A stretch of 63,837 nt of DNA, filler included, from Guillardia theta CCMP2712 (lineage: Eukaryota; Protista; Cryptophyta), in NCBI RefSeq assembly GCF_000315625.1. It is 6 parts of 6 records of this genome, joined end to end, with 100 filler letters (N's around TTAATTAATTAA, not from the genome) between each part and the next. Parts side by side here need not be neighbours in the genome. Positions count along the whole stretch, not along the records: positions 21,436 to 39,257 come from NW_005434335.1; 5 more parts are not named here. One strand, written 5' to 3'. This document shows, in pieces, positions 31,433 through 33,731 of the stretch. Position 1 is the stretch's first letter; the number at the start of each line of letters is the position of its first letter. The position numbers and the translations under genes are program-made. The notes beneath the pieces are model-generated. The model was not told the DNA's origin. It saw only the letters and a list, made by a program, of their open reading frames with translations, and did not search any database.

Positions 31433-33731
31433 TTGAAGTATCGCAAGTTCTTTGCGGCGGGAAATTCCAACCTTATGATCGTGGAAGTTCAAGGCAGCAA
31501 TATTTTGTCACTCAACAGACCGCAGGAAGATCCTCCTCATGTCTTTGTCTACAGGTTGCATCCTGAAGACAACATGACCGATGTCCGACATGCTGACGAG
31601 AAGAAGTTATCGGAGCGACTACATGCGGCTCTCCACGACATCCTCTCCTCCTCGGAGCCTCAGGGCATCCTCAAGATCTACTCCGGCAAGACTTACCTTG
31701 ACATGTCCTGCTTGCCTGCCCCCGACGAGCAGGAGACGACTGGGTCCAGGGCCAGATACCTGTGGAGCTGCTCGGTGTTCGTACCCGTGATCAGCTGGGG
31801 GAAGGGCGGGAGCGTGCTGGAGCAGCTGGGGAGGATCAACGAGGAGCATGACTACGTCAGCGACTTTCTCGTGCACGCGCTGACAGCTCTCTACTTGCTC
31901 AACAAGGACGCCGGGAGGCTGAAGGCGGTTCTGCCCATCCTGCGGGACGAGTCGGGGGGCAAGACATCTATGTCCAGCGCGTTCGACAGGTTGAGTCACA
32001 AGGCGTCGATGAGCAGCTGCGAGCGGGCGAGCGAGGTGCTGCTGGAGGTGGGGGTGCGGAGGGAGAAGGAGGCGATCCTGCAGTACCTGCTGGGGGTGTC
32101 CGTCAGAGATGCGGTAGCAATGCTGCTGCCGGCGGTGCGAGGGGCGCAGGGAGTGCAGGAGGAGGAGAGAGGGAGGAGGAGCAAGGGGGTGTATGGCATG
32201 TACGTGGCGGCGGAGAATGACGTGGAGAGGAGCGCGGTGGAGGCGGGGGAACTCATAGTAGCTTGCCTGTCCAAGATAGTGCGGGAGCACGTTGATCGCA
32301 AGTTGTGGGAGTTTTCCAACCACAACCCGCGGGGGATAGAGGTGCTGCAGGTGCTGCGTGAGAGTGGCTTGCACGACAGGTTCTTCGAGTTCTTCGCGCT
32401 CAGGGGCATCGAGACCATCCACAAGGTGAGCAAGCACACCAAGACCTCCTTCATGCACAGGCGATGCGGGGCCGTGACCAGGTCCTGCGACGAGGTCCTG
32501 GCTGCCCTCCAGCACCACGATGAGAGCTCCGTCCGGACGCTGGAGAAACTGGTGGAGGACTACAGGGAGGACGAGCGCTTCCTCCCCCTCAACGAGCGGC
32601 TCCGGCGCTACCGGGACTCCGACGTCCACGGAGTCCTCGCCCTGCGCACCAGCAACTCGCTGGAGACAGCGCTTGTCAAGCTGCCAGCCAGGAGCTGCGT
32701 CGTCTTCCTCAGCCTCGTCTACCTCGTCTTCGGCGTCAAGCAGCTGGGGCTGCTGGGAACAGATCAGCTCTGGCTTCCGCACACGAACAGCAGCACGCCT
32801 GTCTCCCCTCGAGTCGTGCGCATCTCGACGGTGGCAGATCCCATCATCAGCTTCACCTGGAGCTTCCTCTTCCTCTCTGGTATCGTCCTCTCCCTCTTCA
32901 GCACCCCCCTGCAAGGCAAGCGCCTCCTGCTCGCCACAGGGCACCTGGTGATCGCCGGCAACGTCATGTGCGTTGTGGCCGACGCGCTACAGTGCTCGAG
33001 AGAGGGGACGGGGATCGGATCGGTGTGCAACTCCAACATGAAGGTGGTGGCGATCGTGCTGCTGATGCTCATCATGTACCTTGCTCACTTCGTCCAGCAC
33101 TACTTCTGGCTCTCCGCCTTCTTCATGCAGGGCGCCTACTGCCTCCTCGTCTCGGCTTCCGTCTCGCACGTTGCTGAGCTCTCGATCTTCCTCCTCCTCG
33201 GGCTCGGCTGCTGGGCCGTCGGCCTGCTCATCGTCGTCAAGTACCACCTTGCGTACCGGAAGACGTTCAGAGAGCTCAAGGTCGCCATGCTCGGCTTCGA
33301 GGAGACGTGGAGGGGAGTGATGAGGGAGAAGGCGCGGGCGGTGGAGGAGATCAGCGTGCTCGCGCGAGCGATCGCGGAGGAGCTGGAGGAGAAGGTCAGG
33401 GAGGACACGAAGACGTGGGGGAGGCTGCTGTGCGTGACGCTGGGGCTGAAGGAGAGGAGGTACTCGAGGAGGAACGGGAAGATCCGGCAGGCGAGCCGAG
33501 ACTTCGAGCAGCTCTTCCTCCAGGCGCAGGAGGTCAGCGCCGCCTTCCAGCTGTGGGTGTCCGGGTGGAACCGGGTGGGGCGGGTGGAGCATGGTAACGT
33601 CAAGTCTTGCGCGCGAGCGATGCAGAAGACGGTGAGGTCGTACAGGCGCGACCCCTCGTGCCTGACCGACCTGGTGCGATGTACCATCGTGGTGCAGTCG
33701 GTGGAGGAGGTTCAGGAATGGCTGAGCTCCT
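31433..33731 (+). CDS. Large membrane protein: TIR-like domain, SAM-like segment, multiple TM helices and a RelA/SpoT-like nucleotidyltransferase (3' end in gap)
   Basis: Open for more than 760 codons. TIR-like VFVYRL..YLDMSCL..SCSVFVPVISW..AVLPIL; about 7 hydrophobic segments (32700-33240); VKSCARAMQKTVRSYRRDPSCLTDLVRCTIV. Start codon uncertain. Confidence 0.75.

Follow-up and report, generated by a model that had tools for sequence, protein, structure and literature searches.

The locus and its reading frame

The window analyzed here, a stretch of 63,837 nucleotides (filler included) from the cryptophyte Guillardia theta CCMP2712, includes at positions 21436-39257 the scaffold JH993303.1 (17,822 bp), which carries the gene GUITHDRAFT_122485. 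For positions 31433-33731, the original prediction had proposed a signaling protein joining a TIR domain to a SAM-like stretch, a multispanning membrane part and a RelA/SpoT-type domain. This candidate is confirmed by a continuous frame and by blocks conserved in relatives: window positions 31433-33730 on the plus strand form 766 codons with no stop, and the motifs quoted in the prediction are all present in the translation. It is very likely that we are dealing with one nuclear gene encoding a membrane protein in which a TIR domain that has lost its Glu is followed by a SAM-like region, a juxtamembrane motif, six transmembrane (TM) helices, a linker and a RelA/SpoT homolog (RSH) synthetase-like domain. 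The features of the locus are as follows, with residues numbered from the TTG at 31433, i.e., from the mechanical open reading frame (ORF).

31475..31477, plus strand: probable start codon (Met15), the first ATG past the stop at 31394-31396, aligned with the N termini of orthologs P0002 and P0003
31532..32278, plus strand: predicted TIR-fold domain, ORF residues 34-282 (AlphaFold2 model, structure searches, iterative profiles)
31874..31876, plus strand: His148 codon, at the conserved TIR Glu position in the helix C motif DFLVHAL (family alignment column)
about 31952-32194, plus strand: helical insertion of ~80 residues between TIR strands D and E (model)
32306..32560, plus strand: SAM-like helical region, ORF residues 292-376, core PRGIEVLQVLRESGLHDRFFEFFALRGIETI (family profile A6, Pfam matches of relatives, model helices)
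32570..32692, plus strand: conserved juxtamembrane motif DERFLPLNERLRRYRDSDVHGVLALRTSNSLETALVKLPAR, residues 380-420 (alignment)
32693..33247, plus strand: six predicted TM helices (Kyte-Doolittle hydropathy of the protein and family average)
33248..33484, plus strand: charged helical linker, residues 606-684 (sequence, with weak matches only, to helical/coiled families)
33485..33730, plus strand: first half of a Tas1-like RelA/SpoT-type synthetase domain, residues 685-766, cut by the gap (phmmer, family profiles)
33732..34413, no strand: assembly gap of 682 N, predicted home of the remainder of the gene (read from the sequence)

A TGA occupies 31394-31396; from 31397 on, the frame stays open until the first N, at 33732. 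Met15 is the likely start because it aligns with the N termini of the Hanusia phi and ENA orthologs. The NCBI model of the gene (P0001, 679 aa, window 31574-33665) looks truncated at both ends, since it begins at Met48, past the first conserved TIR β-strand, and since its final five residues (ATPRA), just 5' of the N run, stand in for the conserved NVKSC.RAMQK block. This ending looks like a device for closing the model ahead of the N run. By analogy with paralog P0009, whose final 59 residues are encoded by two small extra exons, the gap should contain the GYRD and E.Q motifs together with two short introns. When four relatives/paralogs were compared with the window by tblastn, matches ended at 33730 and no C-terminal remnant was found 3' of the gap.

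An artifact, whether from a single frame being read through two adjoining genes or a pseudogene, or from misassembly around the gap, is most improbable. The shorter NCBI model, which stops ahead of the gap, and the missing 3' end would fit such an account, but it is contradicted by the 766 stop-free codons and by ten full-length relatives, found by a word-indexed search, which are 43-69% identical over their full length and have the same domain order. These relatives include transcript-derived proteins as well as four full-length G. theta paralogs. Two separate genes, in particular, were rejected on the strength of the continuous, conserved frame and of the transcript-derived Hanusia phi protein P0002, which is 69% identical to GUITHDRAFT_122485 and spans all domains, leaving the single gene of the original prediction.

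The N-terminal domain is predicted to adopt a TIR fold

The structure of the N-terminal portion was modeled with AlphaFold2 for residues 15-415 (model m73b9e737a5c1, 401 residues, 23-row alignment), with a predicted local distance difference test score (pLDDT) of 76.8 and a predicted template modeling score (pTM) of 0.76. In the model, elements follow the order β-α-β-α-β-α-α-β, then come a helical insertion, a final short strand and a long helix. On this model, the N-terminal domain is a TIR fold. When 48,161 representative chains were searched with VIA-align, TIR domains filled ranks 1-11, with RPS4/RRS1 on top (4c6t_B; Z 12.1, root-mean-square deviation (rmsd) 3.6, 154/166 aa). Other TIR domains scored Z 11.4 (RPP1), 10.3 (Cat1 and SARM1), 10.2 (AtTIR), 10.0 (IL-18R-β) and 8.9 (MyD88), and unrelated flavodoxin-like folds scored Z ≤8.5. 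The five top Foldseek matches were likewise plant TIR domains (L6, L7, RPS4, RUN1), with a probability of 0.99-1.0 and an E value of just 0.011; nothing reached E ≤1e-3 for the 401-residue model. The motifs HVFVYRL (residues 36-42), CSVFVPVISW (113-122), DFLVHALTAL (144-153) and VLPIL (166-170) map within the domain. The TIR fold that the original prediction had placed at 31541-31942 is thus upheld by structure, but its extent is not, because the ~80-residue helical insertion splits strands D and E and carries the domain on to about 32278.

At the sequence level, the TIR identity emerges through distant relatives. Neither GUITHDRAFT_122485 nor its close paralogs score above the gathering threshold of Pfam TIR or TIR_2, and the family profile run against the PDB did not detect TIR domains by sequence. 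Two distant relatives sharing the C-terminal module do pass Pfam TIR_2, P0045 with 34.2 bits and P0051 with 28.6 (cut-off 28). An iterative hidden Markov model search, seeded with the Guillardia/Hanusia TIR-domain rows and run over the fetched relatives at a nominal database size of 1e6, reached in round 1 a protein (P0124, E 1.9e-7) that itself carries a faint Pfam TIR_2 match (E 0.073), and in round 3 the TIR_2-positive P0045 and P0051. An hhalign comparison of the N-terminal alignment with a single Pfam-positive TIR protein of metagenome contig L003 gave only a spurious alignment.

The original prediction had noted a His where TIR NADases have their catalytic Glu, and the family alignment agrees. 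In the His148 column, 21 of 30 relatives that are distinct, the TIR_2-positive P0045 and P0051 among them, have Glu (motif vDNVLLE..AL), and members of the Guillardia/Hanusia clade have H, Y or L. As the motif lies where helix C begins, we take this column to be that of the catalytic Glu. The helix C motif of SARM1, D.V..E...AL, resembles that of the Glu-bearing relatives. Since His148 replaces a conserved Glu, the TIR domain of GUITHDRAFT_122485 has probably lost NADase chemistry.

A SAM-like region and a conserved juxtamembrane motif

Residues 292-376, which are helical in the N-terminal model, include the motif LRESGLHDRFFEFFALRGIETI at residues 308-329. When family profile A6 was compared with the PDB, it matched 13 SAM chains (SHIP2/EphA2, several Eph receptors and ANKS1B), all at profile positions 286-330, which correspond to the core given above; the best match was SHIP2/EphA2 (5zrx, E 0.0084). 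Among relatives, Pfam SAM families are found near threshold, with SAM_2 in P0023 at 20.4 bits (cut-off 20.5) and SAM_1 in five of 51. No Pfam SAM match was found in GUITHDRAFT_122485 itself. The SAM-like stretch of the original prediction therefore survives as a repeated, faint profile signal in the family and its relatives, but not as a Pfam match in the protein, and we consider the SAM-like identity of this region weak but consistent.

Between this region and the membrane lies the juxtamembrane motif, which has many invariant columns among 11 relatives and is kept in distant relatives with differing N termini (P0028 and L003_760). No known family matching it was found.

Six predicted TM helices and a charged linker

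Around 7 TM helices had been expected. Instead, family-averaged hydropathy gives six, with peaks at residues about 421-441, 468-490, 497-519, 535-556, 558-580 and 584-605, and seven were rejected on this basis. The membrane part matched no family, and searching the Atlas with it yielded nothing usable. Several features bear on topology: Lys and Arg residues are clustered ahead of helix 1 and past helix 6, loop 1 carries an NSS sequon, and loop 3 has two conserved Cys. We infer an N-in/C-in arrangement from these cues, which would place the TIR, SAM-like and C-terminal domains on one side of the membrane, presumably the cytosolic one.

The linker that follows helix 6 is probably a coiled coil, and it is conserved in relatives that have just TM helices, linker and C-terminal domain. 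In one paralog only (P0005), residues 677-746, corresponding to approximately 33180-33400 in the window, weakly match Pfam SLATT_6 (E 0.014, 15.4 versus 27.1 bits).

The C-terminal domain is predicted to be an RSH synthetase fold related to Tas1

In GUITHDRAFT_122485, the first half of the C-terminal domain includes residues K724, R728, K732, D746 and R749, the last two within the LTDLVRCTIV stretch (745-753). The catalytic motif set of RSH synthetases comprises a basic K/R cluster, a metal-binding Asp, a GY.. motif and E.Q, of which the last two would fall inside the gap in this copy. By phmmer, residues 685-756 match residues 243-316 of the Pseudomonas aeruginosa effector Tas1 (6ox6_A) with an E value of 1.3e-4. 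This is the sole significant PDB sequence match of the whole protein, and it covers only the start of the C-terminal domain. Family profiles match Tas1 better still (E 3.1e-5, 1.5e-6 and 4e-7), with a significant alignment that spans the first half of the domain only. In the second half, a sub-threshold block pairs E.Q...H..Y..R of the family with EIQV...HKYYEDWR of Tas1.

What lies past the gap point can be read from full-length paralogs, which continue with ITSIKNRYD......GGYRDLC.CVEVGW...HICEIQV...HKEYVNFRN and thus conserve RSH nucleotide and metal motifs. In sets of 65 and 51 relatives, K..R...K..R, D..R, the Arg of NRF, GYR and E.Q vary little or not at all, and K..R...K..R is invariant in the 51 long relatives. 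A single family, Pfam RelA_SpoT (PF04607), comes up repeatedly for this domain, with weak matches in five of 34 and four of 51 relatives (best E 1.8e-5); it does not match GUITHDRAFT_122485 or its paralogs. Pfam scans of seven paralogs/orthologs returned only sub-threshold helical or TM families.

Because the copy in GUITHDRAFT_122485 is without its second half and the C-terminal domains of the paralogs are split over three exons, we modeled Baffinella frigidus KAJ1477114.1 (P0033, 212 aa; 65-row alignment, pLDDT 89.1, pTM 0.85), the nearest relative available in one piece. Foldseek returned 37 matches at E ≤1e-3 and, among the matches listed, all were RSH synthetases, in the order RelP (1.6e-6), SAS1 (3.6e-6), Tas1 (1.5e-5), and then CapRel, Rel and RelSeq. 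In VIA-align, RSH synthetases filled ranks 1-26, with SAS1/RelQ at Z 15.7 (rmsd 2.5, 148 aa) and Tas1 at Z 11.7 with the highest identity (23%), and the first different fold (TdT, polymerase lambda) came no higher than Z 7.9. Together, the Tas1 sequence matches and the structural ranks of P0033 indicate that the C-terminal domain of the family is, on this model, an RSH synthetase fold, nearest to Tas1 in sequence. This agrees with the RelA/SpoT-type domain claimed beforehand, of which the window holds the first half but not the rest, which is predicted to lie inside the gap. Matches to both TIR and RelA/SpoT-type proteins, by profile or by structure, were therefore obtained.

The fold alone does not give the acceptor, which leaves room for a different product. 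The C-terminal domain could pyrophosphorylate the 3' CCA end of tRNA, as CapRel and FaRel2 do, and stop translation from within the same architecture instead of producing a free nucleotide. CapRel (7ztb, 9erv; Z 11.0-11.4, 155-157 aa) and FaRel2 (Z 7.0-7.8) are indeed among the fold matches, but Tas1 alone is detected by sequence, CapRel and FaRel2 escaping detection, and both Tas1 and the small alarmone synthetases score at least as high as CapRel. We regard a tRNA acceptor as unlikely.

Equally unlikely, in our view, is that the C-terminal domain is a nucleotide-binding regulator or pseudoenzyme and that the effector is the six-helix membrane part, acting as a pore or channel in the manner of the 2TM SLATT-type effectors found in bacterial nucleotide-signaling systems. 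The conserved polar residues D517, Q520, H552, Q555 and Q566 in the membrane part would suit a pore, as would the SLATT_6 signal at helix 6 and the linker of P0005 and the many relatives that retain only TM helices, linker and C-terminal domain. However, that signal is single and far under its cut-off, and K..R...K, D..R, GYR and E.Q are near-invariant over hundreds of relatives, as expected of an active enzyme.

An ordinary plastid-type RSH/CRSH making (p)ppGpp would be the conventional explanation, given that RSH enzymes exist in algae and have the same fold. We rejected it as highly improbable because the domain content contradicts it: neither GUITHDRAFT_122485 nor its paralogs have an HD hydrolase, TGS, ACT or EF-hand Pfam domain, there is no N-terminal targeting peptide, and the RSH domain, which Pfam RelA_SpoT misses in these proteins, sits in a TIR-SAM-6TM architecture. 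Moreover, the nearest sequence is Tas1, not Rel or RelQ.

The architecture recurs in cryptophytes and in environmental sequences

The four full-length G. theta paralogs, GUITHDRAFT_111645, GUITHDRAFT_108018, GUITHDRAFT_109014 and GUITHDRAFT_109015, are 44-56% identical to GUITHDRAFT_122485. The other full-length relatives, besides P0002, are further Hanusia phi transcriptome proteins and ENA metagenome proteins. An exhaustive profile search extended the family to 542 representatives at E ≤1e-3, most of which have only the C-terminal domain in common. Since the conserved blocks recur in ten cryptophyte relatives and in hundreds of distant ones, their conservation is far beyond chance. Wherever a relative is assigned to a named organism, that organism is a cryptophyte (Hanusia phi, Baffinella frigidus or Rhodomonas salina); the other relatives are MMETSP transcripts or unnamed metagenome proteins. 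Atlas searches also gave unconfirmed leads, namely clusters labeled as diatoms, ciliates and foraminifera, and RelA_SpoT-bearing clusters in phages and Pseudomonadota. In NCBI and UniRef, proteins of the family are named only hypothetical or uncharacterized.

Two of the paralogs lie in a tandem array on G. theta scaffold JH993001.1 (locus L001), composed of the following.

L001:2-11046: tandem family array, a partial copy followed by GUITHDRAFT_109015 and GUITHDRAFT_109014
L001:2-2055: partial family copy, containing a called 140-aa gene
L001:3449-7010: GUITHDRAFT_109015
L001:8001-11046: GUITHDRAFT_109014, final 59 residues in two small exons (10809-10916 and 10963-11043)

Across relatives, a constant module runs from the SAM-like region through the juxtamembrane motif, the TM helices and the linker to the RSH domain, and the N-terminal part ahead of it is variable. 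This part is a TIR-like domain in many relatives. In P0045, a Pfam-positive TIR_2 and an F5/8 type C domain stand ahead of the constant module, and in P0028 (1443 aa, with 14 near-identical ENA members) a protein kinase and HEPN_DZIP3 are found where others have TIR. Many relatives are reduced to TM helices, linker and C-terminal domain. Variable front ends, tandem paralogs and the company of TIR and SAM domains are typical of conflict and immune genes, from which we infer, by analogy, that this family may belong among them.

On two JGI metagenome contigs (L003:1719-4721 and L004:3-1892), C-terminal relatives of 223-238 aa that look standalone are found 4-10 bp past a long gene. The long gene starts with FHVFISYRV, which is TIR-like, and is matched by the family profile in its SAM/juxtamembrane and linker parts, because of which the pair looks like one architecture called as two genes. 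Neighboring genes encode a Pfam-positive TIR_2 protein (L003:5070-5642, E 6.5e-7), U-box and VWA/Vwaint proteins, protein kinases and a D5_N/PriCT_2 primase-like protein. These contigs may be viral or protist in origin. A scan of IMG/VR with the C-terminal alignment gave 32 pattern matches, 0 of which were confirmed.

Genomic neighborhood

The genes adjoining GUITHDRAFT_122485 are unrelated to it, and there is no secretion-system context. Upstream, at 30278-30994 on the plus strand, the window has an unannotated ORF of 238 aa, with a charged, coiled-coil-looking stretch (…AKVEREIDQVIQQLDEDERF…) and no similarity to the TIR-SAM-TM-RSH family. A tandem repeat with a 43-bp unit (6.6 copies, 97% matches) is found at 25543-25824. 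Downstream of the gap, positions 35653-39247 are dense in microsatellites (TCC, AGCAC, CTGCTC, CCT, CAG and TCCTC arrays of 75-158 bp), which give rise to long low-complexity ORFs on both strands.

Comparison with known systems

With Tas1, a (p)ppApp synthetase delivered by the type VI secretion system, the family shares KS.ERAMQK...DP..I.DL.R.TI.V and, below threshold, EIQV and H.YY..WR. However, Tas1 is a toxin that bacteria secrete and that is paired with an immunity protein, whereas the G. theta protein is predicted to be integral to a eukaryotic membrane, bears TIR and SAM-like domains and has only a putative product. In fold, the closest matches are RelQ/SAS1 and RelP/SAS2 (5ded, 6ex0 and 6fgk; Z 13.3-15.7, rmsd 2.5-3.2, ~150 aa). 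They share the motif order, but they have no sequence similarity to the family detectable by HMMER, and are soluble bacterial tetramers making (p)ppGpp. CapRel/toxSAS proteins (7ztb), fused toxin-antitoxins of antiphage defense, offer a likeness of another kind, the use of an RSH fold as a growth-arresting immune effector. Unlike the G. theta protein, they are bacterial and soluble, have tRNA as acceptor and carry a fused antitoxin domain, a regulatory element with no equivalent in GUITHDRAFT_122485.

At the other end of the protein, the likeness is to SARM1/TIR-1, an NADase with the order ARM-SAM-SAM-TIR, in which a TIR domain and a SAM-type oligomerization module are combined in a cell-fate/immune protein. 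The G. theta protein differs from SARM1 in its order, TIR followed by SAM, six TM helices and RSH, and in having His for Glu. Known eukaryotic proteins of the RSH superfamily are RSH1-4/CRSH of plants and algae and MESH1 of metazoans. The former are long plastid RSHs with HD, TGS or EF-hand domains and the latter is a lone hydrolase; none is known to carry TIR, SAM or six TM helices.

A candidate membrane-bound, TIR-linked pyrophosphokinase

Taken whole, i.e., the architecture plus a pyrophosphokinase output, the explanation that we favor is reasonably probable. How such a protein might work can be proposed only tentatively, by analogy, and we would sooner bet against the detail of the scheme than for it. 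The TIR and SAM-like domains would oligomerize the protein, serving as scaffold or assembly modules like those of SARM1-type proteins, with the membrane part sensing a cue or anchoring the complex. Assembly would turn on the C-terminal pyrophosphokinase, which, in a Tas1-like reaction, would take pyrophosphate from ATP and attach it to an adenine nucleotide at the 3' OH. The (p)ppApp-like product might then drain ATP and halt growth, or serve as a messenger, in stress or antiviral defense.

Several points weigh against this account. The second, catalytic half of the C-terminal domain is absent from the assembly in GUITHDRAFT_122485, and its RSH fold was modeled on P0033, which is 39% identical to the domain of a G. 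theta paralog, and not on GUITHDRAFT_122485 itself. General scans of the protein gave no meaningful Pfam, NCBIfam or PADLOC match, those to IMS_C, LlsX and DUF948-type families being at chance level. Membrane topology rests solely on hydropathy, and the enzymatic output of GUITHDRAFT_122485 is deduced from its sequence, in which the acceptor substrate cannot be read, Tas1, RelQ and CapRel being one fold with different products. Finally, the link to immunity is made through analogy and domain company.

Overall, the interpretation put forward in the original prediction is supported. We rate the protein as a new architecture made of known domains, and its C-terminal domain as part of a new eukaryotic branch of Tas1-like RSH domains. 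To our knowledge, eukaryotic RelA/SpoT-type synthetases have been described only as stringent-response enzymes of plastids, and such domains have been described in a toxic or immune role only in bacteria and phages. In line with the earlier view that the architecture is uncharacterized in algae, we found in the searchable literature, itself incomplete, no description of a eukaryotic TIR-SAM-TM-RSH protein or of Tas1/RSH with TIR or SAM in eukaryotes, an absence of evidence and nothing more. Published work was found on Tas1, toxSAS and SARM1, and on conflict systems of bacteria that include RelA domains (PMC7159879).

The broadest version of the idea, more doubtful still than the scheme above, is that these proteins are a protist family of membrane-bound immune or stress effectors, in which a TIR/SAM-triggered, Tas1-like pyrophosphokinase makes (p)ppApp-type nucleotides or modifies tRNA, arresting or killing the infected cell. 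If true, they would be a eukaryotic counterpart of the abortive infection mediated by bacterial toxSAS/CapRel, and would constitute a cytosolic alarmone-type pathway outside plastids. Should the C-terminal domain be active, pyrophosphorylated-nucleotide chemistry would also operate in eukaryotic cell-autonomous defense or signaling, and TIR-based signaling proteins would have a new output domain. G. theta, a model cryptophyte with a sequenced genome, carries the fusion as tandem paralogs, many protist sequences from the environment have it too, and the intact G. theta paralogs make the idea directly testable.

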